A program made the translations under genes and the position numbers. This document shows, piece by piece, positions 15,143 to 30,605 of a stretch of 64,000 nt of DNA (positions within the stretch are counted from its first letter, which is position 1; the number at the start of each line of letters is the position of its first letter). The notes beneath the pieces are model-generated. The model saw nothing but the letters and a program-made list of their open reading frames with translations. It was not told the origin of the DNA and ran no database searches. Source of the DNA: Caecitellus pseudoparvulus (lineage: Eukaryota > Protista > Bigyra: Bicosoecida); contig CBFFRQ010000057.1 of the NCBI GenBank assembly GCA_965644315.1, forward strand, positions 558,001 through 622,000. Reading direction: 5' to 3'.

Positions 15143-18100
15143 ATGGCGGCGGAACGTCCAGATGCCCAGCTTGGGGCTAGTGGGTTGCCAAACTCGCAGC
15201 GCCAGCGACACCAGCGCGATGGCAGAAACCCAGCATCAGCACCCCGCGCCCCTGGCTCCATCCGGACTCTCTCTGACATCGAGAGCGAGGCTGCCTCAAC
15301 CGGTTCATCCATACGCCTCCCAGGTGCAGTAGCTGCCCAGCTTGGCTTCAGAGTGGATGGCCGCCATGTTCCCCTGGACCCAAGCTTGCACGCCAAACCT
15401 GGTGCAGGTCACCGTCGCATGCGACGTGGCTCCGCTACTTCCATGGGAAGCAGCATCACATTCGCAACGTACGGCAGCGCAGCATTTCTCGAATCAGAGG
15501 AACTAAGAGACCTTGATCAAGTTCCTGGGCACGTGCTGCCTGCAACGAGGCCAGCTTCAGCTGGGGCAAGCCCGCCCAGTCACCTGGCTGGTCCTTTTCC
15601 AGCAGTCCACGCATCTACATCGTCACCACCGCTGGTGTCCAATACCATGAGTGCTTTGGAGGATGCCGACTTTGTTCCATTGCCTGACTCCGACCAGGAA
15701 TCCGCATCCTCTCGATCAGGAAGCGAGAGCCATGAGGGAAGCGTGAGCACAGTCAATACTGAGCTCATCCCCGGATTTCGAGATGGGTCCCCTCGGCGAC
15801 AGAGTTTGGTGCGCGAGCAGCCCCCTCACAGAGACTGGCAAGCCCTGCAGCAAGGCTGGGCAGATCTTAAAGCCCGCCAATCTGAGCTTGAGCTTCAGAG
15901 GCAGGAGCTGGCTGAAGCGATGCAGCGGGCGGGGCACTCTTCGCCGAAGGCACCAAACACGATGGGCGGTCATGAAGGCGAATCTGCGCGCACCAAAAGC
16001 GTTCCCAACGCATGTGCAAGCACTCCCCAGAGCACCCTTGAACCACATCAGCAACCGAAGCAAATTGAGAAACTCACCACCATGCCGAAAGCAGAGCGAG
16101 CAATCGGTGAGGCAAAGCTCGCATCACTGCAGAGCGAGAAGGATGCGGCGGAGTCGGCGCTCGAGGCAGCTGTAACTGAGAAGGATGCGGTGGTGTCGGC
16201 GCTGGAGGCAGCTGTGACTGAGAAGGATGCGGCGGAGTCGGCGCTGGAGGCAGCTGTGACTGAGAAGGATGCGGCGGAGTCGGCGCTGGAGGCAGCTGTG
16301 ACTGAGAAGGATGCGGCGGTGTCGGCACTGGAGGCAGCTGTGACTGAGAAGGATGCGGCGGTGTCGGCACTGGAGGCAGCTGTGACTGAGAAGGATGCGG
16401 CGGTGTCGGCACTGGAGGCAGCTGTGACTGAGAAGGATGCGGCGGAGTCAGCACTGGCATCACTGCAGAGCGAGAAGGATGCGGCGGAGTCGGCGCTGGA
16501 GGCAGCTGTGACTGAGAAGGATGCGGCGGTGTCGGCACTGGAGGCAGCTGTGACTGAGAAGGATGCGGCGGAGTGGGCGCTGGAGGCAGCTGTGACTGAG
16601 AAGGATGCGGCGGAGTCGGCGCTGGCATCACTGCAGAGCGAGAAGGATGCGGCGGAGTCGGTGCTGGAGGCAGCTGTGACTGAGAAGGATGCGGCGGTGT
16701 CGGCACTGGAGGCAGCTGTGACTGAGAAGGATGCGGCGGAGTCAGCACTGGCATCACTGCAGAGCGAGAAGGATGCGGCGGAGTCGGCGCTGGAGGCAGC
16801 TGTGACTGAGAAGGATGCGGCGGTGTCGGCGCTGGAGGCAGCTGTGACTGAGAAGGATGCGGCGGAGTCGGCGCTGGAGGCAGCTGTGACTGAGAAGGAT
16901 GCGGCGGAGTCGGCACTGGCATCACTGCAGAGCGAGAAGGATGCGGCGGAGTCGGCACTGGAGGCAGCTGTAACTGAGAAGGATGCGGCGGTGTCGGCGC
17001 TGGAGGCAGCTGTGACTGAGAAGGATGCGGCGGAGTCGGCACTGGCATCACTGCAGAGCGAGAAGGATGCGGCGGAGTCGGCGCTGGAGGCAGCTGTGAC
17101 TGAGAAGGATGCGGCGGAGTCGGCGCTGGAGGCAGCTGTGACTGAGAAGGATGCGGCGGAGTGGGCGCTGGAGGCAGCTGTGACTGAGAAGGATGCGGCG
17201 GTGTCGGCACTGGGATCACTGCAGAGCGAGAAGGATGCGGCGGAGTCGGCACTGGAGGCAGCTGTGACTGAGAAGGATGCGGCGGAGTCGGCACTGGAGG
17301 CAGCTGTGACTGAGAAGGATGCGGCGGAGTCGGCACTGGCATCACTGCAGAGCGAGAAGGATGCGGCGGAGTCGGCGCTGGAGGCAGCTGTGACTGAGAA
17401 GGATGCGGCGGAGTCGGCGCTGGAGGCAGCTGTGACTGAGAAGGATGCGGCGGTGTCGGCGCTGGCATCACTGCAGAGCGAGAAGGATGCGGCGGAGTCG
17501 GCACTGGCATCACTGCAGAGCGAGAAGGATGCGGCGGAGTCGGCGCTGGAGGCAGCTGTGACTGAGAAGGATGCGGCGGTGTCGGCACTGGAGGCAGCTG
17601 TGACTGAGAAGGATGCGGCGGTGTCGGCGCTGGCATCACTGCAGAGCGAGAAGGATGCGGCGGAGTCGGCGCTGGAGGCAGCTGTGACTGAGAAGGATGC
17701 GGCGGTGTCGGCACTGGAGGCAGCTGTGACTGAGAAGGATGCGGCGGAGTCGGCGCTGGAGGCAGCTGTGACTGAGAAGGATGCGGCGGAGTCGGCGCTG
17801 GAGGCAGCTGTGACTGAGAAGGATGCGGCGGAGTCAGCACTGGCATCACTGCAGAGCGAGAAGGATGCGGCGGAGTCGGCGCTGGAGGCAGCTGTGACTG
17901 AGAAGGATGCGGCGGAGTCGGCGCTGGAGGCAGCTGTGACTGAGAAGGATGCGGCGGAGTCGGCGCTGGAGGCAGCTGTGACTGAGAAGGATGCGGCGGA
18001 GTCGGCGCTGGAGGCAGCTGTGACTGAGAAGGATGCGGCGGTGTCGGCACTGGAGGCAGCTGTAACTGAGAAGGATGCGGCGGAGTCGGCGCTGGCATCA

Positions 18101-21100
18101 CTGCAGAGCGAGAAGGATGCGGCGGAGTCGGCACTGGCATCACTGCAGAGCGAGAAGGATGCGGCGGAGTCGGCGCTGGAGGCAGCTGTGACTGAGAAGG
18201 ATGCGGCGGTGTCGGCACTGGAGGCAGCTGTGACTGAGAAGGATGCGGCGGAGTCGGCACTGGCATCACTGCAGAGCGAGAAGGATGCGGCGGAGTCGGT
18301 GCTGGAGGCAGCTGTGACTGAGAAGGATGCGGCGGTGTCGGCGCTGGCATCACTGCAGAGCGAGAAGGATGCGGCGGAGTCGGCGCTCGAGGCAGCTGTG
18401 ACTGAGAAGGATGCGGCGGAGTGGGCGCTGGAGGCAGCTGTGACTGAGAAGGATGCGGCGGAGTCGGCACTGGAGGCAGCTGTGACTGAGAAGGATGCGG
18501 CGGAGTCGGCACTGGAGGCAGCTGTGACTGAGAAGGATGCGGCGGAGTCAGCACTGGCATCACTGCAGAGCGAGAAGGATGCGGCGGAGTCGGCGCTGGA
18601 GGCAGCTGTGACTGAGAAGGATGCGGCGGAGTCGGCGCTGGAGGCAGCTGTGACTGAGAAGGATGCGGCGGAGTCGGCGCTGGCATCACTGCAGAGCGAG
18701 AAGGATGCGGCGGAGTCGGCGCTGGAGGCAGCTGTGACTGAGAAGGATGCGGCGGTGTCGGCGCTGGAGGCAGCTGTGACTGAGAAGGATGCGGCGGAGT
18801 CGGCGCTGGAGGCAGCTGTGACTGAGAAGGATGCGGCGGTGTCGGCGCTGGAGGCAGCTGTGACTGAGAAGGATGCGGCGGAGTCAGCACTGGCATCACT
18901 GCAGAGCGAGAAGGATGCGGCGGAGTCGGCGCTGGAGGCAGCTGTGACTGAGAAGGATGCGGCGGTGTCGGCACTGGCATCACTGCAGAGCGAGAAGGAT
19001 GCGGCGGTGTCGGCGCTGGAGGCAGCTGTGACTGAGAAGGATGCGGCGGAGTCGGCGCTGGAGGCAGCTGTGACTGAGAAGGATGCGGCGGAGTCGGCAC
19101 TGGCATCACTGCAGAGCGAGAAGGATGCGGCGGAGTCGGCGCTGGAGGCAGCTGTGACTGAGAAGGATGCGGCGGTGTCGGCGCTGGAGGCAGCTGTGAC
19201 TGAGAAGGATGCGGCGGAGTCGGCACTGGCATCACTGCAGAGCGAGAAGGATGCGGCGGAGTCGGCGCTGGAGGCAGCTGTGACTGAGAAGGATGCGGCG
19301 AAGTCGGCGCTGGAGGCAGCTGTGACTGAGAAGGATGCGGCGGTGTCGGCACTGGAGGCAGCTGTGACTGAGAAGGATGCGGCGGAGTCGGCACTGGCAT
19401 CACTGCAGAGCGAGAAGGATGCGGCGGAGTCAGCACTGGCATCACTGCAGAGCGAGAAGGATGCGGCGGAGTCGGCGCTGGAGGCAGCTGTGACTGAGAA
19501 GGATGCGGCGGTGTCGGCACTGGGATCACTGCAGAGCGAGAAGGATGCGGCGGAGTCGGCGCTGGAGGCAGCTGTGACTGAGAAGGATGCGGCGGAGTCG
19601 GCACTGGAGGCAGCTGTGACTGAGAAGGATGCGGCGGTGTCGGCGCTGGAGGCAGCTGTGACTGAGAAGGATGCGGCGGTGTCGGCACTGGGATCACTGC
19701 AGAGCGAGAAGGATGCGGCGGAGTCGGCGCTGGAGGCAGCTGTGACTGAGAAGGATGCGGCGGTGTCGGCACTGGCCTCACTGCAGAGCGAGAAGGATGC
19801 GGCGGAGTCAGCACTGGCATCACTGCAGAGCGAGAAGGATGCGGCGGAGTCGGCACTGGAGGCAGCTGTGACTGAGAAGGATGCGGCGGAGTCGGCGCTG
19901 GAGGCAGCTGTGACTGAGAAGGATGCGGCGGTGTCGGCGCTGGAGGCAGCTGTGACTGAGAAGGATGCGGCGGTGTCAGCGCTCGAGGCAGCTGTGACTG
20001 AGAAGGATGCGGCGGAGTCGGCACTGGAGGCAGCTGTGACTGAGAAGGATGCGGCGGAGTCGGCGCTCGAGGCAGCTGTGACTGAGAAGGATGCGGCGGA
20101 GTCGGCGCTGGCATCACTGCAGAGCGAGAAGGATGCGGCGGAGTCGGCGCTGGAGGCAGCTGTGACTGAGAAGGATGCGGCGGTGTCGGCACTGGGATCA
20201 CTGCAGAGCGAGAAGGATGCGGCGGAGTCGGCGCTGGAGGCAGCTGTGACTGAGAAGGATGCGGCGGAGTGGGCGCTGGAGGCAGCTGTGACTGAGAAGG
20301 ATGCGGCGGTGTCGGCGCTGGAGGCAGCTGTGACTGAGAAGGATGCGGCGGAGTCGGCGCTGGCATCACTGCAGAGCGAGAAGGATGCGGCGGAGTCGGC
20401 ACTGGAGGCAGCTGTGACTGAGAAGGATGCGGCGGAGTCGGCGCTGGCATCACTGCAGAGCGAGAAGGATGCGGCGGAGTCGGCACTGGAGGCAGCTGTG
20501 ACTGAGAAGGATGCGGCTGTGTCGGCGCTGGAGGCAGCTGTGACTGAGAAGGATGCGGCGGTGTCGGCGCTGGAGGCAGCTGTGACTGAGAAGGATGCGG
20601 CGGAGTCGGCGCTGGCATCACTGCAGAGCGAGAAGGATGCGGCGGAGTCGGCACTGGCATCACTGCAGAGCGAGAAGGATGCGGCGGAGTCGGCGCTGGA
20701 GGCAGCTGTGACTGAGAAGGATGCGGCTGTGTCGGCGCTGGAGGCAGCTGTGACTGAGAAGGATGCGGCGGTGTCGGCGCTGGAGGCAGCTGTGACTGAG
20801 AAGGATGCGGCTGGGGCAGCACTGGCATCACTGCAGAGCGCGAAAGATCAACTTGCACGGAATTATGATGCGTTGGAGGTGTCGTATGGCGATCTTCGAG
20901 AAGAGTTGGCTTCTCTTAGGTCACGTTTGGATGCTTCCAAGGACAGGGTGTTTCAGGCAGTACAGCTGAATGAGGTGCTTCAGGATCGTCTTCAAGTGCT
21001 AGAACAGCGATCGGGTCGGGCTGATCGTTTCAATGTTGGCACCCAAACTTCTGCTTTAAGTGCCCAAGGAGATGATGGTCCGGATGATATGTATCGCAGC

Positions 21101-23446
21101 TTGAGTCGGCAAGGGTCGGGAAGCCCAGTTGTTGGTCCAGAGGTTCACACCGACGACTCTGCTGGGTATAAGGATTTGTACTTTGCAATGCTCCAAGAAC
21201 TCCATGAGCTGAAAGAGAACCCACATATGCGATCAGGGCAGCATGTTGGCGCTGCGTTGAGTGCCCAGGCTGGCGCGTCTCACATTCAGAAGTTCCACAC
21301 ACCCACAAGACCGGAGCCACGTCGCCCACCCCCACATTCTCCACCAAGTCGCTCACCAGGTGCGGGGGCTGCCAAGACTTCACCAAATGATGGGGAAGAA
21401 GCGCTCGGAGCGCCCCATTTGAGCTGTTCTATCCACGCTGGCGAATCGGACTCCGCGAAGTCTTTGCCTCAAAGTGCAGCGAAGCCACCAAGTCCTCAGC
21501 GGCATTCTGCGAAAGGGTCGCACAGCGCTGACTCACTGGAAAGCGCTGAAGAGCCAGAGCATGGCATGCACCTTGCACCGTCAACTGTGGCAATGGAGGA
21601 TCAGGAGCGAGTACAACCGCGAACGGGGCGACGTAGCGTGCTGACACTGGACGCGAACCTCATTGATGAGTTTGCCCGGGATGTTTCAGAGACTGGGTCT
21701 GTCGGCGCACGGTCAGCTGTGTTCGGCGAGGGCGACGGTCTCCCTCTTGAGATGCTGCAGGTCATCTGGTCATTGTTCTTCCATTCTGTCTGCACAAGCA
21801 AAACTGTGCACCTTTCACACGGTCTCTCTGCGCGGGACTTTCAACAGCTCCTTCACGATGCCGGCGTGCCTTTCCTCGGAGCAGCGCGTGCAGCTCGAAG
21901 CTCTGAGGTTCAGGGGTGTTTACACACGGGCATTTCTATGGCACCAAATGTGACAGCAACAGTTCTGTCGATTGAGCTGAATGGGGGAAAGTGGGGGCGC
22001 GGGGAGCTTGCCCGGCATGGAGAATCGGTGAAGCAGTTACTGCACCAAGCTGCTGCTGCGGCAACGGAGGAGGGGAACATGGGGCAACAGCAGCAGCTCT
22101 CTCCAATTCTTCCGCCGGCCGATGGAGTGCATCCTCAGCCTGTTCATGCTGCACGAGTCGGAATCATCATGGAGCAGCGTCGTGCGGGGGGAGCAGACGC
22201 TGCCCGTCAGTTGTCGCCAATGGCCTCAAGAGCCTCGAGGGATATCATGCCCGGAGCCGCAAGCGCACCAGTGCACCATGCAGTCGCGGAGGGAGAGACC
22301 CCAGGCTCTAGAAGACTTCAGTTTACCGGGTTCTTGAGCGCTTTGCATGCCATCGCAGGCGAAGTGTATCCCGAGTACGAGGCTCGCTGTGTAGGGGCCA
22401 TGTCCCCGGGGTCTCATGGTGAAGGTGCTTTTTTCAACTCTCCATCCCCTCAAGCTGGTCGACATGATAGCGACACGGACACCGCGGTCTGGAAGCCTGG
22501 CTGCACTGCTGATGCCCGCAATGTTGCGTTGTGCAGGCTGTACTTGTGCTACCTGCTGCCGCTTGCCTTGCACAAGGGTCTAGCTCACGTACGGGAAGAA
22601 GTAGACGAGGAGAGCGACACCCAGGGCAGAGGACCAGATTGCCGCGTGCCTGAGCGCCCGCTTCGACCGCACGTGTCCGCGGACGGCAGCGTCCAGCACA
22701 CGGAGTTTGATGTCACGTGGTCTGGAAGCGTGTCTCAGTTTCTGATTGCTGACGTTATGGAGGACCAACACCTGCGAGAGGTGCTGGACTCAAACAAGGA
22801 ACCCATCTTGGCTGTCTTTAAGCACTTCTCTGATGTTCGCCTAGTGGGCGCTGGGCGGCGCAGTGAGTCACCGGGGATCACGCTGGAAGGAGTGCTCCGC
22901 ATGCTGAAAGGCTTTGAGGTGCTGTCCAAAGTGCCTATTCTTCAAGTCCAGCGGGTGTACGAAGTGTGCTTACTCAACACCCCAGTTGAAGGAGGCAGCG
23001 ATCCCAGGGTTGGGCACCAGCGAAGCGTCTTTTCCTGTTCTGCTCCGATCAGCAAGTATCTCTACTCAAGCTCTACCGCAGGCGTAGGGGCCTCTGTGCC
23101 GAACGCAGTGGCCATGGCACTGACATTGAAGGGGTTTCGACGATTCCTGTGTGGCTGTGCCCTGGTTGGAGGTGGTGTTTTGGTGCCAGTGTACGGCTTG
23201 CGTCAGGAGGAAGGGCGCTCATCCGGTGTCCGAAGTACGTACGCGACAGCCATGCGGATGAGCGCGGGGCAAGCAAGGCAAAGCGGTCCTTTGGTGGATA
23301 CAGGCAGCCATTGGCACCCCCTTCACATTGTGCTTCTTGCATTCTTAGACTGGCTTGACTGCCACAAAGCTGCAGGGTCTGGGCAAGCAGAGGTTGTCCC
23401 TCGCTTGCCCACTTTTCTGACCCGCATTCGCGGGACGAGCGTCTGA
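15143..23446 (+). CDS. Giant coiled-coil repeat protein (2767 aa) with a C-terminal degenerate EF-hand/p25-alpha-like region; probably cytoskeletal or flagellar-apparatus
   Basis: One uninterrupted ORF with a central 14-aa (two-heptad) repeat. C-terminal helical motifs LSARDFQQLLHDAGV, LQFTGFLSALHAIAGEVYP, ILAVFKHFS..ITLEGVLRMLKGFEV and LTLKGFRRFL resemble TPPP/EF-hand-like folds (weak call). Confidence 0.7.
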   Translation: MAAERPDAQLGASGLPNSQRQRHQRDGRNPASAPRAPGSIRTLSDIESEAASTGSSIRLPGAVAAQLGFRVDGRHVPLDPSLHAKPGAGHRRMRRGSATSMGSSITFATYGSAAFLESEELRDLDQVPGHVLPATRPASAGASPPSHLAGPFPAVHASTSSPPLVSNTMSALEDADFVPLPDSDQESASSRSGSESHEGSVSTVNTELIPGFRDGSPRRQSLVREQPPHRDWQALQQGWADLKARQSELELQRQELAEAMQRAGHSSPKAPNTMGGHEGESARTKSVPNACASTPQSTLEPHQQPKQIEKLTTMPKAERAIGEAKLASLQSEKDAAESALEAAVTEKDAVVSALEAAVTEKDAAESALEAAVTEKDAAESALEAAVTEKDAAVSALEAAVTEKDAAVSALEAAVTEKDAAVSALEAAVTEKDAAESALASLQSEKDAAESALEAAVTEKDAAVSALEAAVTEKDAAEWALEAAVTEKDAAESALASLQSEKDAAESVLEAAVTEKDAAVSALEAAVTEKDAAESALASLQSEKDAAESALEAAVTEKDAAVSALEAAVTEKDAAESALEAAVTEKDAAESALASLQSEKDAAESALEAAVTEKDAAVSALEAAVTEKDAAESALASLQSEKDAAESALEAAVTEKDAAESALEAAVTEKDAAEWALEAAVTEKDAAVSALGSLQSEKDAAESALEAAVTEKDAAESALEAAVTEKDAAESALASLQSEKDAAESALEAAVTEKDAAESALEAAVTEKDAAVSALASLQSEKDAAESALASLQSEKDAAESALEAAVTEKDAAVSALEAAVTEKDAAVSALASLQSEKDAAESALEAAVTEKDAAVSALEAAVTEKDAAESALEAAVTEKDAAESALEAAVTEKDAAESALASLQSEKDAAESALEAAVTEKDAAESALEAAVTEKDAAESALEAAVTEKDAAESALEAAVTEKDAAVSALEAAVTEKDAAESALASLQSEKDAAESALASLQSEKDAAESALEAAVTEKDAAVSALEAAVTEKDAAESALASLQSEKDAAESVLEAAVTEKDAAVSALASLQSEKDAAESALEAAVTEKDAAEWALEAAVTEKDAAESALEAAVTEKDAAESALEAAVTEKDAAESALASLQSEKDAAESALEAAVTEKDAAESALEAAVTEKDAAESALASLQSEKDAAESALEAAVTEKDAAVSALEAAVTEKDAAESALEAAVTEKDAAVSALEAAVTEKDAAESALASLQSEKDAAESALEAAVTEKDAAVSALASLQSEKDAAVSALEAAVTEKDAAESALEAAVTEKDAAESALASLQSEKDAAESALEAAVTEKDAAVSALEAAVTEKDAAESALASLQSEKDAAESALEAAVTEKDAAKSALEAAVTEKDAAVSALEAAVTEKDAAESALASLQSEKDAAESALASLQSEKDAAESALEAAVTEKDAAVSALGSLQSEKDAAESALEAAVTEKDAAESALEAAVTEKDAAVSALEAAVTEKDAAVSALGSLQSEKDAAESALEAAVTEKDAAVSALASLQSEKDAAESALASLQSEKDAAESALEAAVTEKDAAESALEAAVTEKDAAVSALEAAVTEKDAAVSALEAAVTEKDAAESALEAAVTEKDAAESALEAAVTEKDAAESALASLQSEKDAAESALEAAVTEKDAAVSALGSLQSEKDAAESALEAAVTEKDAAEWALEAAVTEKDAAVSALEAAVTEKDAAESALASLQSEKDAAESALEAAVTEKDAAESALASLQSEKDAAESALEAAVTEKDAAVSALEAAVTEKDAAVSALEAAVTEKDAAESALASLQSEKDAAESALASLQSEKDAAESALEAAVTEKDAAVSALEAAVTEKDAAVSALEAAVTEKDAAGAALASLQSAKDQLARNYDALEVSYGDLREELASLRSRLDASKDRVFQAVQLNEVLQDRLQVLEQRSGRADRFNVGTQTSALSAQGDDGPDDMYRSLSRQGSGSPVVGPEVHTDDSAGYKDLYFAMLQELHELKENPHMRSGQHVGAALSAQAGASHIQKFHTPTRPEPRRPPPHSPPSRSPGAGAAKTSPNDGEEALGAPHLSCSIHAGESDSAKSLPQSAAKPPSPQRHSAKGSHSADSLESAEEPEHGMHLAPSTVAMEDQERVQPRTGRRSVLTLDANLIDEFARDVSETGSVGARSAVFGEGDGLPLEMLQVIWSLFFHSVCTSKTVHLSHGLSARDFQQLLHDAGVPFLGAARAARSSEVQGCLHTGISMAPNVTATVLSIELNGGKWGRGELARHGESVKQLLHQAAAAATEEGNMGQQQQLSPILPPADGVHPQPVHAARVGIIMEQRRAGGADAARQLSPMASRASRDIMPGAASAPVHHAVAEGETPGSRRLQFTGFLSALHAIAGEVYPEYEARCVGAMSPGSHGEGAFFNSPSPQAGRHDSDTDTAVWKPGCTADARNVALCRLYLCYLLPLALHKGLAHVREEVDEESDTQGRGPDCRVPERPLRPHVSADGSVQHTEFDVTWSGSVSQFLIADVMEDQHLREVLDSNKEPILAVFKHFSDVRLVGAGRRSESPGITLEGVLRMLKGFEVLSKVPILQVQRVYEVCLLNTPVEGGSDPRVGHQRSVFSCSAPISKYLYSSSTAGVGASVPNAVAMALTLKGFRRFLCGCALVGGGVLVPVYGLRQEEGRSSGVRSTYATAMRMSAGQARQSGPLVDTGSHWHPLHIVLLAFLDWLDCHKAAGSGQAEVVPRLPTFLTRIRGTSV
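16121..20839 (+). repeat. Coding minisatellite: 112 units of 42 bp in two interspersed types (EKDAA[E/V]SALEAAVT and EKDAA[E/V]SALASLQS)
   Basis: GCATCACTGCAGAGC occurs at 16121 and at 20825, exactly 4704 = 112 x 42 bp apart. The unit core GAGAAGGATGCGGCGGAGTCGGC is visible throughout. Confidence 0.97.
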
Positions 23447-23486: not shown

Positions 23487-26400
23487 TCAAGACTCCAACT
23501 TGAACGTTTTATGCGACAAAGCCTCAAGCTGGGCAGTTGCATCTGCCGCATTGACGCCGCGGCTGCTCATGAACTTATGCGCCGCGCCGCCTGTGGGCGA
23601 GAGAAAGCTTGAGTGCATGCGGTCAGCCATTCCTGGTGGGCCACAAATCCAGCAGGCTGCAAGCCTTTCAAAACCACCACTACTGTCTGCTGCCCAGGAC
23701 GACAGGGCACCCATGGCATGATTCAGCGTCCGAGCTATGGTTTTGCTCGCGGCGCTGGAGTCCCTCAGCGACCCAGATGAACAGCAGAGCCACGTAACTC
23801 CACTGTTCGCAGTGAGAGCTTGAGACACATCAGCGTGGACTACATGCGGGAGCTCCAAAGTGTCAATGCTGACGTCACCGCTGAGGCGTGTAAAGTGCAC
23901 GTGCACTGAGATCCTATTGCCGCGGTCGCGTCGTGACGAGGCTGCAGCGAGGAAAGCCAAGAGCGGCAGGGCAACGGCTTCCGCCGGGTTTGAGGCAAGG
24001 ACGAGAAGATGCAAGTGGACCTCAGTGCTGAAGGGTGACTCGTGCTGGCCACCGAGCCTAGGCACTGCCAGCAGTGCAAATGCCAAGTCAACAAATGGTG
24101 CCAAGCCTGTTCCAGCCGCGATGGCGATTGCAAGTGCTGGACCCACTCCCGTTTCCAGGCCATTTACGGCGGCAACAAGCCCAAGTGGCGCGCCAGTGGG
24201 GCCTGCAATGCTTAAAGATGAGTGGGTCACGCCAGCCATGTCATGTAGGAAGCGAGAGCTGACCCCACGTGGAGCGGGGAAGCGCCGTACCCAAACCTGG
24301 ACACTGGGGTGGAGGAGGCTGTCCAAGCTAGGCTCATCGATGGCCGAGTACCAGGATGCCAGCGCAGCAGCGTCACATGACTGCATACTTTGCGTGAACA
24401 CCTGAGGCAGCCTCACTTGCGTGAAGGCTCGGCGGTGGGTCATGCCGTCGCCACTGGCTGCGTCTGAAACCTTCGGAATCAGCTGCCCTGTGCTCGGGTC
24501 AACATCAATAGATGCAGGCAAGTCTACGTACAGGTGCAAGCCAAAGGATGCCCAGTCAAGCAAGGGCTTCACATGCACTTGTTGACGAGACTCAGCCTGT
24601 TCCAGTGAAAATGCCACCACGGGCCTCTCACTTGAGAAGCCGCCAGCGCGGCTGGAAATATCATACCGGCGGCTGACACGCCACGGGTGGACTTTGCGCG
24701 CCTCCAGTTCACCCGCAGTGCCAACGACACTAGCCCGGCCTAGGCGAAGCCCTGCATGTGATGTCGGCGGTGTTGGACTGGGTGTGGCAGTCTCAGCTTC
24801 GGCAGGGTTCGCTGACACGGTTGTTGAGTCGTGGGAGGGCTTGACGCTTCCAGAGCGTGAAGAGAAGCAGCACCACAAGCAGGCGCGCTGGTGATCAGCG
24901 ACTCGCCTCGATTCGCCATGTGCTGTGCTGAGTGGTTCTGGGTGCTGTGCTTCAGCCAGGGATTCGCCTTCGGCTGCTGCAAGCGCGCGCATGCCAGTCT
25001 GGGACGTGTCGAGCACAGCCACAAGCATTGATGCAAGCATAGCACGGGCTCGATGTGAGTGCTTGTGGGATGGAATGCGAGGGTCCAGAGTGTCGACACC
25101 CACAAACGACTCTGTCACATCTTGTCCGACGGACTTGATGATGACGAAGGCTGACCCTGCATGCTGTTGTGCGAATTCAGCGACATCGTAGACACCTCCT
25201 CCAATGATCGTGAGCTTCTCATCATTGACAGCAACCTGTTCTTGGAATTCCTCGTACGTGATGACTGGGACCCCTTCATCTGTCAACACCCGCGTGGGTG
25301 CAGGGCTGCGCTTAAGCTGAGTGTCAACACGAAGACCGCCAGGCTCTGAACCCGGCGAAGGGCTGCGCAGGAGGGCAGCAGTGGGGATTCGGTCGGGAGA
25401 GCCGGGAGGCAAGGCTTTTCCCTCTTTGTGCAATGCAGTAAGGGACACCGGGCCCGTCGCTGCTTTGGGAAGGCTATCTGCAGCGCTGCTCCAAGCATGC
25501 AGCATCGCTTTCAAGCGCTCTGCCGCTTGTGCCGGGGAAAGTGTCCCGTCTTGCACCTTCTCGAATAAGGCTTGCAGCAGAGAGAGGGGCATGCTTGAAG
25601 GAGCACCTGGGGCTGCGACCGAGGTATGGCTTGGAGATGCGGCAGCGGCCGGGGACGGACACAAGCCAGCTTTGATTCCTCCTGCAGAGTGGGCATGCTG
25701 CTCCCCTTGCCGACTTGCAGCTTGTAACTTCGCAACCAGCCGAGCAGCAGTCAGGGCAGCTCTGCCATGCCTGTGCTGTGGAGTTCCCTGCTTGAGCCCC
25801 TTCCGAACTTGTAGCATTGATGAAGAGGGTTCCTTCTTTAGATCTGCCTGCGTCGCAGCTCGCTTGAGGGCTCGATCCAAGTCTGCCAGGGCGCCAGCTT
25901 TCTTGAGCTCTGCGATGACTGTCTGCTCGTCTCGCTGCCGCCGTGCTTCCAAAGCAAGGATCAGCAGGAAGAGAAGGCAGTACCAAGTGATGGGGACCCA
26001 AACATACTGTCCCCTTTCCCAGAATTGCACGCCCAAATACACCTGCGCACGGGGAGGGCTGGACGTCAATGCAACCGAAACACCGCAACAACAGCCAGGT
26101 CTGCGCTCGCAGGCACACTTACATTCGCGAGAGCAGTAGGAAACATGGCAAGCCCAAGCAGGACATGCCCTTGCTTGAAGCGCCTGAGGGTCCAAGTGGG
26201 AGTGGTGGTTGAGGTGAAGAACGCTTTGGCAGCTTGGCCGAGAGCGATCTGCAGCAGAGTTAGAAAGGCCAGGGTGATGCCGATGTACCCGTGGGGGGTG
26301 ATTGGGCGCCCCTGCGCTTCGGAGGTCGAGAAAGCAGCTGCAGCAGTTGGAATGGTTATCGTGCCAACAAGATTCATCACTGCATGGTGCAGGTCGATTG

Positions 26401-28613
26401 CAAAGGATTTCTTCCCTCCGGAGTACTCCATGAGTATGATCGACAAGGGAGTGACGACGCCCCATGCAACCGCCATCGTTACACCGTGAATGATGTAAGA
26501 GGTGTCGAACTCTTGCGCCGTGTCCAAGGATCCTGGCTGCACAACGTCAGCGCCCAACCCAGCAAACAAGTTCACCCGCGCACGGGCACGGTTGTTCACT
26601 CCATGGTACTGCAGGTTGGGACTATCCAAGCGGTACGCAAACACCATGGGCTGGAACACCTCCTGCATGCGGGCGGCATCGCCCTGCAAGGGCACAGCTT
26701 CGCCGGCAGCAATGGCAGCAAGGCTGTGTTGGAAGTAGGAGACGAGGGCTGCAGGGAGCTCGACACCGACGTCACTCGCGTCTGCAGGCACGGCTTTGCG
26801 CTGGATGGTAACTGAGAAGACATGCGCCCCCGAGTCTGTCCTGGATGGAGGGCTGCGAGATACTGGAGGTGTGGAGGTTGTGAGTGTATCTTCAAGATCG
26901 ACGGCATCCAAGTCAATGTAGCCGCCGGAAATTAGCACAGTGTCTGAGGCGTCAGAGTCCGGAGTCGGGGCAGAGTACGCTGTTGCAGCAGCATCAACCA
27001 CACGAGGGGAGCCTGGCAATAGGGTTCCAGTTGCGGGGTCAACCTCAACAAAGGCTCCAATCATATCAGAGCCAATCATCTGCGTGCCGAAACCGAAGGC
27101 GGCCCAGAAACCACTCCAGGCTCCGTTACCCACCTGACCCGCAGCGATGCGCACTCGAATGTTGAAGAGAATGAACTCTGGCGCAACCTGCAGTCTAACG
27201 CCCTCTGTGGATGCAGATTCGGCCAATGTCTTCGCTCCTTGCCTAGCAACGTCCATGTCGATAAGGTCTCCATTTCCTGCCGCAAACTCCCACCGCAAAG
27301 AGTAATCTTCGAGGAAGCCAAGTGCAGGCAGTGTCGTGTTTCGCCGACGCTGAACTCTCGCCGGGGAGGGCTCCCACAGGTTAATCTGCCGCCGTACTCG
27401 GCGATTCGCACCGTGGTGAACTGGCTCCCACCGGCTTGGATGCCATGCTGCAATGATGTCTTCAAAGCGAGGTGTCACTACAAGGCCTGCTGGTCGCGGA
27501 GCGCCAGCGCTCACCCAAGCGAAGTATGCGGCTAGGAAAGGGGGCGGGGAAATGACGTGATCCACAGCATCCCCGGTGTCGAGGAGACGGGAGTAGGACA
27601 TGGTGAAGGCTGTGGGCTGCCCTGGCGAGGTAGGCGGAGGGGTCTGAACCACAGCTGGGTCAAGAGTTCGGTTGGCCGCTGCTTCAGCTGCCGGGGCAAG
27701 GTATCCCCCTCCTTCGTCGTCAAGCAGGTCTTCCTGAGCATCACGCCTTGGAGGGCCTGTTGCGATTGGGTCTGTGTCGCTTGCCCATGACTGCACAGCA
27801 GAAAGCGGCGTGCAATTGGCTGGCGCCACAACACCCATGCGGCACTGTGTGTTGAGCAGGCGAACTCACGCGAACGATTGAAAAGTCCGAAGTGTTCACC
27901 ACAATGCGGCTGCAGAAAAGGTCACTACCAGCCATCCCCACCCCAAATCCAAACCCTGCCCAAACGCTGCGGGAAAGAAGGGGTCGCGTGCCAAAGCATG
28001 CGGCAAATGGCTCCGCAACGCAACCGAGCGCAGGTCTCGCCCTGCCGGCAAGGCAGAGTCGCGGGACGCACCCAGTGAAGCCAGGATCCCCAAGATGGGG
28101 TGTCTTCATGATCCAGCTGAAGCGAATGAACTCGGGGGCGGCAATGCGGGGGACGCTGCTCTCACCAGACGCCCAGCGTGTCGCGGCGTCCACGGCAGCG
28201 CTCAAGTCGTATACCTGTTTCCCTGCGTCGAGGAAACCCCAGCGGAGGGCATACTGGCCGCCTCCCAAATTAATGCCAGGTAGAGCATCTTGAGAAGGGT
28301 CAGAGGGCTGGCCAGCCATCGCACGGGCATGCCGAAACCACGTCGCAGTGCGCCCGCTCCAGCCATGTCTCAGAAACGCACGTGAAACCCAGGAGTGCCC
28401 CAGCCAAGCTTGCACCCACGAGGGATTTGCAAGGTCAACAGAGGGATGCTGCGTCAGGGGCTCATCTGCATGGTACCTAGACCCGGCTTCATTTCCATGC
28501 AGCAGCCCACCCACTGCGAGCAAGCACACAAACGCCACAACCAGCGCTGGTGGGAGCTGCACCAAACGAACCACGGCCGCCACGTGCTGGCTGCAGCGAT
28601 TGCAAGGCCCCAT
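23487..28613 (-). CDS. Multi-domain redox protein: signal/anchor - DOMON - DOMON - cytochrome b561 - cytochrome b5 - FAD/NAD(P)H ferredoxin-reductase-like domain (about 1620 aa; introns 27967-28071, 27791-27869, 26043-26122)
   Basis: DOMON1: WAGFGFGVGMAGSD...PVHHGANR. DOMON2: WAAFGFGTQMIGSD...LQYHGVNNR. b561 His residues in IIHG, DLHH, TPHG, QGHV. b5: GGVYDVAEFAQQHAGS..GQDVTESF..HKHSHRARAML. Reductase: RRAFT, GVSSRFL, IAGPTG, AIAAGTGLAPF, WICGPPGM. Three GT-AG introns join ORFs 27741..28664, 26066..27838 and 23487..26465 in frame. Confidence 0.85.
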
Positions 28614-28706
28614 GTCACGAGGTGAAACGTCTGCTGCTGGGCACCACCTATCTACGAAGAACAATTGTGCTGCTTTTCGAATTACCAGCCCCTCTTTCGT
28701 GCTGTA

Positions 28707-30605
28707 TTACAGGCCCAGCTCTGTGGGGGACACACCAGCGATGTGCAAGATGCGCTGAGCCGACACTGCCGCCTGCGCCGCAGATGTCGTCGTGATGACG
28801 TTGGCAGAGCTCAGCGTGGAGTACACCGACAGCAGGGTATCCCACCGGCTCCCCGTGCCTGACGGCGTCGGGCAGGCAATGACCGGCCACTTTGTGTTGC
28901 AAGCCACAATGGAGGCCAGCGTGCCTGCGCCTGCAGCGTCGACCGCCACGATGACCGTGGGGATGGTGCGCTCATGCACTGGCTTGAGCGGCTTCCCGTG
29001 CACGTCACGGGGCACGACCACACCTTCTTTGGGCGGGGCCGTGTCAATGCCGGCCAGGCCAAGGGAGGGGTCAGACTGCAGCCTCGCAATGCTGGCGCTC
29101 GCCGAGAAATCCTCCACAGCCTCCCCTTCAGCCACAGACTGCGGCCCTGAAGCATCGGGTGGGGGTGCCTCTAGCTCCGAGCCGTCTCCAAACAAGGTGC
29201 CGAACTTCAGCTTGCGAAGCTTGTTCAGGAGGCGGGCCACACTGCCAGGGGCGTTAGCTGCGCTAGGCCGAATCACGTGCACCTCTGACGCCACACCCTG
29301 GTTGCTCAAAGCCTCCGCGATGGCATTGGCGTGCTCCTCTGGCGTTGGGCCCGCATCTGCAGAGCTGGTGATGCCCGCTGCCGACGCGGACGCCTCAGCT
29401 GCTGCTGGGCCATCCGCAACTACCACCGTCCGGCCACGGCCGATGGAAGGGAAGGTGGCTCGCAAGGCTGCCACGATGGAAGGTTGCACACTTGTCGGTG
29501 TGTCTGGGAAGGCAAATGGCTGCCCCGTGATGAGTTCGTACAGCAGGGTGTAGCGGCGTGACAGCTCTGCCACGAGTTGCGTTGGCGCCTCGGGCAGCAC
29601 TGGGTCTCGGTATGGGTCGCAGTGCTGCCTGTACCACAGGCGGACGAACTCTTTATCGATGTTGTCGGGTTCCATTTTCATCGCGTGGCGCTCTGCGTAC
29701 GTGTCCAGCAGCCAGTACCGCGAACTGTCAGGCGTGTGCACCTCGTCGATGATGATGATCTCGCCATCGGACGCGATGCCGAACTCATACTTGGTATCAA
29801 CGAGAATCAAGCCAGCACTTGACGCAGTCTCTTGACCATACCGGAATAGCGCAAGGGCGTAGTCCCGACACTTCTCCCACACCTCCTGAGACAACCTGTA
29901 AGGCAAGGCGTGGTGCGGATTTTGAGCTGTGCATCTTGCCGACACACCCACGCTGTCACTGGCCAAAGGCGGGCGTTGCCAGGGTCTTGAAGGCACGTAC
30001 CACCCCTCTCCAACAATTTCCTTCGGACCTATTGGCCTGTCATGCTCGTCTTCTTTCGTCGTGGGCGTGATGATGGGCTCAGGCAGTTTGTCGTTCTTCC
30101 GCAGTCCCTGAGGCAGCTTGTTGCCACAGTACTCCAACGCCCCTGCCTTGTAGTGTGTCCACAACGAAGTGGAGGTGCTCCCTGTCATGTACGCTCGCAC
30201 GACGAACTCGATAGGCAAGGGGCGCGTCTTCCGTGCAATGGTCACATTGGGGTGTGGGACGTCCACGAGGTGGTTGGGGCAGATGTGCGCCGTGCGTGCG
30301 AACCACCAGGCTGCCACCGTGTTGAGCACTGCCCCTTTGAAAGGCACCTTGCACAGTACACGGTCAAAGGCAGACAGTCTGTCCGTGGTGACGATGATCA
30401 CCTTGTCCTCGTGGTGCAGGGTGTACACATCCCGCACCTTGCCGCGACGATACTGGCCCACACACAGGTGAGTGCCAGACAGCACCGAGCCGGCAACCAC
30501 AAACTTCGTGATGCGGTCTAAGTACTCGCTGGAGTTTGTCATGGCTGGGGGCACAAAGCCCTCGGAGGCGCCTGTACCCACGCCAGCACTCTCCTCAGCA
30601 GCCAT
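28707..30605 (-). CDS. purC: SAICAR synthetase (PurC/Ade1) with a C-terminal degenerate class II PurE (AIR carboxylase)-like domain; intron 29896-30000
   Basis: PurC motifs: GKVRDVY, TTDRLSAFDR, PIEFVVRAYMTGS, ITPTTK, LILVDTKYEFG, IDEVHTPDSSRYW, DKEFVRLW. The C-terminal IPTVIVAV...NTKWPVIACP resembles the PAICS AIRC domain. Confidence 0.92.
   Translation of the reverse strand: MAAEESAGVGTGASEGFVPPAMTNSSEYLDRITKFVVAGSVLSGTHLCVGQYRRGKVRDVYTLHHEDKVIIVTTDRLSAFDRVLCKVPFKGAVLNTVAAWWFARTAHICPNHLVDVPHPNVTIARKTRPLPIEFVVRAYMTGSTSTSLWTHYKAGALEYCGNKLPQGLRKNDKLPEPIITPTTKEDEHDRPIGPKEIVGEGWYVPSRPWQRPPLASDSVGVSARCTAQNPHHALPYRLSQEVWEKCRDYALALFRYGQETASSAGLILVDTKYEFGIASDGEIIIIDEVHTPDSSRYWLLDTYAERHAMKMEPDNIDKEFVRLWYRQHCDPYRDPVLPEAPTQLVAELSRRYTLLYELITGQPFAFPDTPTSVQPSIVAALRATFPSIGRGRTVVVADGPAAAEASASAAGITSSADAGPTPEEHANAIAEALSNQGVASEVHVIRPSAANAPGSVARLLNKLRKLKFGTLFGDGSELEAPPPDASGPQSVAEGEAVEDFSASASIARLQSDPSLGLAGIDTAPPKEGVVVPRDVHGKPLKPVHERTIPTVIVAVDAAGAGTLASIVACNTKWPVIACPTPSGTGSRWDTLLSVYSTLSSANVITTTSAAQAAVSAQRILHIAGVSPTELGL

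Follow-up and report, generated by a model that had tools for sequence, protein, structure and literature searches.

One gene takes up positions 23487 to 28613, on the minus strand, of the 64,000-nucleotide (nt) stretch of Caecitellus pseudoparvulus DNA analyzed here (the window; positions 558,001 to 622,000 of contig CBFFRQ010000057.1, assembly GCA_965644315.1). It has four exons, and its spliced product of 1620 amino acids (aa) joins two DOMON domains, a cytochrome b561 core, a cytochrome b5 domain, and a flavoreductase of the ferredoxin-NADP+ reductase (FNR) family. The gene, which we refer to as the wire gene, and its chain of domains are real. The host genome is 30.6 Mb in size, with few introns and ~60-70% GC, and its DNA is also present in seawater metagenomes. 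Its 18S rRNA, 1697 nt long as in Cafeteria, and the tree position of a peroxidase-bearing relative (below) would fit a marine bicosoecid-like stramenopile. The parts of the gene, in the direction of transcription, are as follows.

28072 to 28613, minus strand: exon 1, with the start codon, the N-terminal hydrophobic segment, and the beginning of DOMON1; homologous in both paralogs
27967 to 28071, minus strand: intron A, 105 nt, GT..AG, phase 2, in frame, with no in-frame stop
27870 to 27966, minus strand: exon 2, a DOMON1 strand with the candidate heme-ligand Met (codon 27933-27935)
27791 to 27869, minus strand: intron B, 79 nt, GTGAGT..TGCAG, phase 0
26123 to 27790, minus strand: exon 3, the second half of DOMON1, DOMON2, and b561 helices 1-4
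26043 to 26122, minus strand: intron C, 80 nt, GTAAGT..CGCAG, phase 0, connecting the b561 part with the b5-reductase part
23487 to 26042, minus strand: exon 4, the fifth b561 helix, a long linker, cytochrome b5, a linker, the FNR-type reductase, and the stop

Two paralogs with the same architecture lie elsewhere in the genome, one on contig C78 (L016, ~157200-162500, plus strand) and one on contig C52 (L017, ~127200-132600, minus strand); identity to the wire gene is ~45-50% in exon 3 and 33% in exon 4. In C78, a single frame runs without a break from b561 helix 3 as far as the reductase, and the C52 paralog carries DOMON2, b561, b5, and the reductase in one 1499-codon frame. A preliminary description of the locus had joined three open reading frames by two introns into a protein of about 1620 aa. 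These two introns (B and C) are indeed canonical, in phase 0, and without a stop, but by themselves they give 1655 aa; the length of 1620 aa is reached only with the third intron at 27967-28071, which the description lacked. Removal of intron A restores the DOMON strand ahead of GMAGSD. Both paralogs have an intron in the same phase at this site, and the C78 copy carries an in-frame stop and so must be spliced there. A phase-0 intron also lies at the place matching intron B in both paralogs, and for introns A and B alike the positions and phases are held in common whereas the intron sequences are unrelated. Intron C is missing from both paralogs, the frames of which are continuous across the junction, and the joined residues align exactly. 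From four RNA or RNA-like runs, 16 short contigs map to exons 1, 3, and 4 and to the first and last bases of the gene, with coverage of 28317-28662 around exon 1. Exon 2 was matched by the family DOMON profile in a small local search (i-E 5e-6). An independent metagenome contig carries a 99.1% identical allele with 26 synonymous versus 8 nonsynonymous differences (7 versus 3 in the reductase part), which would fit purifying selection.

Searches and fold predictions used single exons or natural frames, and the joined model served only for frame, motif positions, and hydropathy. DOMON1 is spread over three exons and was searched piecewise, so its support is piecewise as well. The following features were assigned within the protein.

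28500 to 28556, minus strand: N-terminal hydrophobic segment, aa 20-38, hydropathy 2.4, following basic residues; present in both paralogs
27380 to 28255, minus strand: DOMON1 (approximate span, across introns A and B), candidate ligands Met 27935 and the His of HHG at 27413-27418
26555 to 27343, minus strand: DOMON2, heme ligands Met 27079 and His 26605
25944 to 26518, minus strand: cytochrome b561, five helices, His 26488, 26389, 26293, and 26167
25503 to 25580, minus strand: short helical linker motif, SHOCT-like (Pfam E 0.039, below the cut-off); kept in all three paralogs
25008 to 25280, minus strand: cytochrome b5, heme His 25163 (HAGS) and 25061 (HS of HKHS); acidic, with 14 D/E versus 7 K/R
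24864 to 24881, minus strand: Cys-rich patch CLWCCF between b5 and the reductase; kept in all three paralogs
23490 to 24689, minus strand: FNR-family flavoreductase, with RAFT at 24431, GVSS at 24266, AGP at 24206, GTGLAP at 24113, FTR at 23894, and CGP at 23645

The preliminary description had credited the DOMON domains with Met and His ligands (GMAGSD and HHG in DOMON1, QMIGSD and YHG in DOMON2), the b561 core with all four His, the b5 domain with both of its His (HAGS and HKHS), and the C terminus with the FNR motifs RxFT, GxxS, GTGLAP, and CGP. All of these are in place, the last set as RAFT, GVSS, GTGLAP, and CGP, and structure prediction, which it had proposed as a check, gave folds that match DOMON, cytochrome b561, and the FNR family. 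For DOMON2, the Pfam match is weak (E 0.002), and the ligands are kept across the family (Met in 84 and His in 86 of 87 relatives). Its predicted structure resembles the cytochrome domain of cellobiose dehydrogenase (E 1e-4) and the DOMON of dopamine beta-hydroxylase (Z 13.2), and its sequence aligns with DOMON1 of the C52 paralog (27% identity, E 1e-5). DOMON1 is more divergent and is supported only by partial profile matches and by homology with the paralogs, with no match in a Pfam scan of the exons and frames; its candidate ligands suggest that it, too, would bind heme.

The b561 core scored 29.7 bits against Cytochrom_B561 in Pfam (cut-off, 23), and its four His are kept in 87, 87, 87, and 86 of the 87 relatives. 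The exon 3 model (mean pLDDT, the predicted local distance difference test score, of 83) placed the core close to Dcytb (Z 11.4, root mean square deviation 2.5) and to an Arabidopsis b561 structure. Four-helix designs scored equally high, however, so the b561 assignment rests on the Pfam match and the His pattern. A fifth helix at ~25947-26006, in exon 4, is followed by RRQR (25932-25943). Helices 2-6 of a canonical b561 begin outside and finish in the cytosol; the five helices and RRQR correspond to these, so the DOMONs would lie outside and b5 and the reductase in the cytosol. This topology, which had been put forward from the fifth helix and RRQR, agrees with that of b561 proteins and with every computational test made. 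The N-terminal hydrophobic segment is presumably a signal peptide or signal anchor that places the DOMONs outside. Three residues ahead of the fourth b561 His, 75 of 87 relatives have R or K. The residue three ahead of the second His is Ile in the wire protein and hydrophobic in most relatives; in plant b561 proteins, a Lys at this position is tied to ascorbate specificity. On ascorbate as a donor, the sequence points both ways.

The cytochrome b5 domain was recognized with confidence in Pfam (41.8 bits versus a cut-off of 23.7, E 1e-10), and both heme His are invariant among 17 relatives. In the b5-reductase model (mean pLDDT 73), the linker is disordered and the reductase resembles ferredoxin-NADP+ reductase (E 2e-10). 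A search of the PDB with the single reductase sequence returned nothing, and the domain was placed only via profiles and folding. Against solved structures, the family reductase profile was closest to NADH-cytochrome b5 reductase (E 5e-37) and also matched nitrate reductase (E 1e-25) and CYB5R4 (E 4e-24). The motifs RxY/F[ST], GxxS, GP, GTG, and CG are kept across ~97 relatives. The wire reductase thus described has the FAD barrel, the NAD(P)-binding fold, and the motifs of the FNR family, with Phe for Tyr, and lacks the C-terminal aromatic residue; its last predicted strand is TFKL, and most family members finish with an aliphatic residue. As to NADH versus NADPH, the profile is nearest to NADH enzymes, and the FTR motif of the window protein resembles the NADP-binding Ser-Arg of FNR. 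The CLWCCF patch may, at a guess, be a palmitoylation site.

The preliminary description had allowed that similar architectures might exist in other protists or fungi, and they were found widely, the two-DOMON layout included. A profile of the shared module retrieved 606 clusters (representatives at 50% identity) at E <1e-30. Since this profile included the window lineage, the score of the wire protein itself is circular; the common invariant residues are not. Among the best 150 of the 606 clusters, 106 had b561, b5, and reductase in one chain, 58 of them with an N-terminal heme peroxidase and 48 without, although some peroxidase-less entries are N-terminally incomplete and possibly miscounted. 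Nine of these 48 had at least two DOMONs, with a maximum of 20. Members occur in Cafeteria, Bicosoecida sp. ms1, Platysulcus, the brown alga Discosporangium, the glaucophyte Cyanophora, several chytrids, and Acaulospora of the Glomeromycota, as well as in the ciliates Protocruzia, Stentor (OMJ77414), Blepharisma (CAG9314975), and Fabrea; compact ciliate members have ~700 aa, and linkers are short in ciliates. Single-chain relatives from Bicosoecida sp. ms1, Protocruzia, and Fabrea are derived from transcriptomes, as is one from Platysulcus with a peroxidase. Since the Bicosoecida ms1 and Protocruzia proteins have two DOMONs, the layout exists as a single mRNA. In Pfam, relative P0071 gave two DOMONs, b561, Cyt-b5, FAD_binding_6, and NAD_binding_1, and P0018 (4632 aa, from a JGI metagenome) has 20 tandem DOMONs ahead of b561-b5-FNR and could be a long extracellular heme wire. 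Two such clusters are also present in the ESM Atlas; one is mostly ciliate and the other peroxidase bearing. An architecture unique to this gene was ruled out by the profile search and the architectures of the relatives. Separately, P0051 (1252 aa) carries about eleven tandem cytochrome b5 domains.

In a FastTree tree of the cytosolic domains, multi-DOMON forms appeared in several places, with P0071 sister to a peroxidase form (support 1.0) and a Cafeteria roenbergensis clade adjoining a peroxidase-bearing relative. This suggests that the outer module may have been exchanged repeatedly, with deep nodes that are weak. The window lineage sits on a long branch among weakly supported deep nodes, and we claim neither ancestry nor an order of peroxidase gain and loss, since tree support is too weak. 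The wire protein has DOMON, b561, b5, and FNR in order in one chain, with the conserved residues of the family. Judged by sequence, it belongs to a broad family of eukaryotes, (peroxidase or DOMON-n)-DOMON-b561-b5-FNR, as a divergent member that lacks a peroxidase and sits on a long branch.

A peroxidase-bearing member is encoded in the same genome, on contig C69 (L018:2924-7441, minus strand), where An_peroxidase, DOMON, b561, b5, and FAD_binding_6 follow one another in one 1506-codon frame. The layout of this gene is the commonest family form and probably the most interesting one. Its peroxidase retains the distal QxxxHD and proximal YRxGH motifs and has Ala where a heme-linking Asp is usual. 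Directly downstream and co-oriented lies a second peroxidase-DOMON gene (L018:472-2508, minus strand), apparently without a membrane or reductase part, the product of which could be a partner of the wire proteins.

We compared the wire protein with four known systems. CYBDOM proteins (Arabidopsis HYP1 and CRR; animal FRRS1/SDR2) have the same outer Met/His DOMON or DOMONs, the same five-helix, four-His b561, and the same trans-membrane path, but they stop after b561 and take electrons from cytosolic ascorbate (PMC10784544, PMC10784552). The wire protein shares the four-His b561 and the Met/His DOMON and, instead of ending after b561, continues with b5 and FNR domains in the cytosol. The closest published functional analogue is the group of DOMON-bearing ferric reductases, with one or two DOMONs, from Naegleria, Albugo, and Phytophthora (PMC3591440). 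These have the same outer DOMONs, a di-heme membrane domain, and cytosolic FAD/NAD(P)H domains. Their membrane domain is Ferric_reduct, however, combined with FRD-type flavin domains and no described b5, whereas the wire protein has a b561 membrane domain and a reductase nearest to cytochrome b5 reductase. Ferric_reduct (PF01794) gave no match at the wire locus, and four other genes of the genome passed its cut-off. The b561 region matched NOX5 with Z 9.4, below the Z 11.4 of b561 structures, and among 17 relatives FAD_binding_6 was found in 13, FAD_binding_8 in none, and NAD_binding_6 weakly in two. The lack of Ferric_reduct and FAD_binding_8 and the lower NOX5 score ruled out FRD/NOX membership.

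DUOX resembles the commonest family form in outline, with an outer animal-type peroxidase, a di-heme membrane domain, and cytosolic flavin/NAD(P)H domains; it has FRD and EF hands where the family form has b561, DOMON, and b5. Unlike DUOX, the C69 peroxidase has its proximal His (PMC4420034), and a review of heme peroxidase families does not mention fusions to DOMON or cytochrome b (PMC4420034). In the window protein itself, Pfam detected no DUOX domain (peroxidase, EF hands, or FRD); the peroxidase is found only in relatives. Finally, NADH-cytochrome b5 reductase, NCB5OR (CYB5R4), and the b5-FAD module of nitrate reductase share the order of b5 and then an FNR-type domain. They deliver electrons on the cytosolic side, whereas in the wire protein the module is coupled to a trans-membrane b561. 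At the C terminus, members of the wire family mostly have Leu, Met, or Val in place of the aromatic residue. Taken together, the comparisons indicate that the wire protein exceeds the definition of CYBDOM, does not belong to FRD or DUOX, and is probably FRE-like in action.

We consider it reasonably probable that the wire protein carries out outward, NAD(P)H-driven electron transfer. One 1620-aa protein would then span the plasma, food-vacuole, or secretory membrane with the whole electron chain, with five hemes expected (one in b5, two in b561, and two in the DOMONs). Going by known families, cytosolic NAD(P)H would hand a hydride to FAD, from which the b5 heme would be reduced one electron at a time, a transfer known from cytochrome b5 reductase and nitrate reductase. 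Tethered by a long flexible linker, the b5 domain would dock at the basic cytosolic face of b561, the site of ascorbate in other b561 proteins, and electrons would pass through the two b561 hemes and the DOMON hemes to an external one-electron acceptor. The likeliest acceptors would be Fe(III) or Cu(II) chelates freed from prey, or a partner heme protein. With its built-in reductase, the enzyme would be independent of ascorbate and would act like a FRE/FRO metalloreductase on a b561 base. By analogy, each step except that from b5 to b561 has precedent, the early ones in b5 reductase and nitrate reductase and the later ones in plant CYBDOMs, where ascorbate serves to reduce Fe(III) and Cu(II) across the plasma membrane (PMC10784544, PMC10784552). 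For the step from b5 to b561 we found no precedent, and an acidic b5 domain and a basic cytosolic b561 face would be compatible with it. The preliminary description had read the protein as a NOX/FRE-like chain; the architecture, topology, and electron path fit all computational tests, but the protein is not a one-off and an analogue has been published.

Several observations weigh against outward transfer as proposed here. The window reductase has no match in Pfam or NCBIfam and is strongly divergent: Phe stands where RxY usually has Tyr, and the terminal aromatic residue is missing. In the C78 paralog, the flavin motif GxxS is gone and GP reads QP, and the reductase there may be altered. None of the 16 RNA contigs from the four runs crosses a splice junction. 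The genome contains at least four ordinary FRE/NOX (FRD-family) genes (L029-L032), and the dominant family form, with its peroxidase, points more to peroxide chemistry than to metal uptake. The same FRE/NOX genes ruled out the idea that the wire protein replaces a missing NOX.

Peroxide chemistry is central to a second reading, which is unlikely but has to be weighed, namely, that the protein is an oxidase that makes superoxide or H2O2 from O2 at its outermost heme, either on the cell surface or inside the food vacuole. In relatives, the fused peroxidase would consume the product as in DUOX, and An_peroxidase is indeed present in 58 of the 106 full-chain clusters. The window protein has no peroxidase and would feed separate ones, such as the C69 peroxidase-DOMON protein, to kill or digest prey; the C69 peroxidase retains QxxxHD and YRxGH and is adjoined by the second peroxidase-DOMON gene. 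In Cafeteria burkhardae, grazing cells show high expression of two peroxidases (PMC7852580), in a paper that is silent on family membership. Against this reading, true NOX-like genes exist in the Caecitellus genome. Hemes with Met/His (DOMON) or bis-His (b561) ligation, moreover, are six-coordinate carriers that are not known as dedicated O2 reducers.

Somewhat more doubtful still is a loose coupling of the two halves, with the DOMON-b561 part acting as an ordinary ascorbate-fed CYBDOM and the b5-FNR part regenerating ascorbate close to the membrane, serving cytosolic acceptors, or being partly degenerate in this lineage. The basic residues kept on the cytosolic b561 face (R/K in 75 of 87 relatives) and the long disordered linkers between domains would suit such an arrangement, but the order b561-b5-FNR is fixed across distant eukaryotes and the linkers are short in ciliates. 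The genome has a sugar-lactone-oxidase-like gene, which falls below family cut-offs, and several reductase-less b561 fusions, both of which speak for loose coupling; the position of the ascorbate-linked Lys, however, is Ile here and hydrophobic in most relatives. Likewise, the flavin motifs have decayed in the C78 paralog, whereas the wire reductase shows an excess of synonymous differences.

We think it very improbable that electrons flow inward, the DOMON hemes taking them from superoxide or Fe(II) toward NAD(P)+ or oxygen as a scavenger, buffer, or sensor. The b561 helices resemble E. coli superoxide oxidase (Z 11.3), but no better than they resemble other four-helix bundles. The member with 20 DOMONs would suit a collector, but b-type hemes usually lie at a higher potential than NAD(P)H, so transfer to NAD(P)+ would be uphill. 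Least probable of all is that the b561 and b5-reductase parts belong to two different genes, as might be supposed from the lack of an RNA contig spanning 26043-26122 and from automatic gene callers that cut the locus into three products, for both paralogs are continuous at this point with exactly aligned residues, an unspliced b561 would be without its fifth helix, and the transcript-derived relatives are single chains.

Outward transfer by the wire protein has a wider counterpart at the level of the family. In eukaryotes, electron export driven by NAD(P)H is attributed to the FRE/NOX family, and the b561 proteins characterized in the papers cited here use ascorbate (PMC10784544, PMC10784552). 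We propose, tentatively and with slightly less than even confidence, that eukaryotes hold a second class of trans-membrane oxidoreductases driven by NAD(P)H, assembled independently on the basis of b561 and a fused b5-reductase, that runs parallel to FRE/NOX/DUOX in stramenopiles, ciliates, glaucophytes, and early-diverging fungi, has a swappable outer module (an active peroxidase or 1 to 20 DOMON hemes), and is undescribed in the literature. By carrying its own b5-reductase, such a b561 would have solved NAD(P)H-driven export a second time, by convergence, and the peroxidase-bearing majority would resemble DUOX while having a peroxidase that seems intact. If this proposal is correct, redox activity at the surface or in the phagosomes of microbial eukaryotes would have in this family a source that has gone unrecognized. 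For its hosts, among them bacteria-eating protists, algae, chytrids, and mycorrhizal fungi, the family provides candidate proteins for extracellular iron reduction and production of reactive oxygen species. The interest lies mainly in the family as this convergent parallel and less in the window gene, which is divergent and linker rich; compact ciliate members of ~700 aa suit testing better. The preliminary description had known of no functional characterization, and we likewise found no functional study of this architecture in the literature. Nor did we find a description of it there, an earlier mention in a domain-architecture figure being possible; the novelty of the family is probable, not proven.

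The wire gene has close neighbors on both sides. Upstream, on the minus strand at 28707-30605, lies a gene for SAICAR synthetase fused to a partial AIR carboxylase (AIRC) domain, probably with introns, the stop of which is 94 nt from the wire gene. Its closest relative, 91% identical, is labeled Symbiodinium sp. KB8, and the next ones are <57% identical; the KB8 assembly presumably contains bicosoecid contamination. On the other side, a convergent 2767-aa open reading frame at 15143-23446 (plus strand), in which ~1600 residues consist of coiled-coil repeats, near-perfect and 14 residues long, comes to its end 40 nt away from the wire gene stop, and the 3' ends of the two genes probably overlap.

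Elsewhere in the genome, other b561 fusions without a reductase (L019-L022) comprise an EGF-b561, a Reeler-EGF-DOMON-b561, and two near-identical Kelch-b561 loci. Among the four FRD-family genes, one has an SH3 domain and one a Temptin_C domain. A third animal-type heme peroxidase, on contig C89 (L028:4084-8001, minus strand), is fused to FG-GAP repeats and an UnbV/ASPIC domain.

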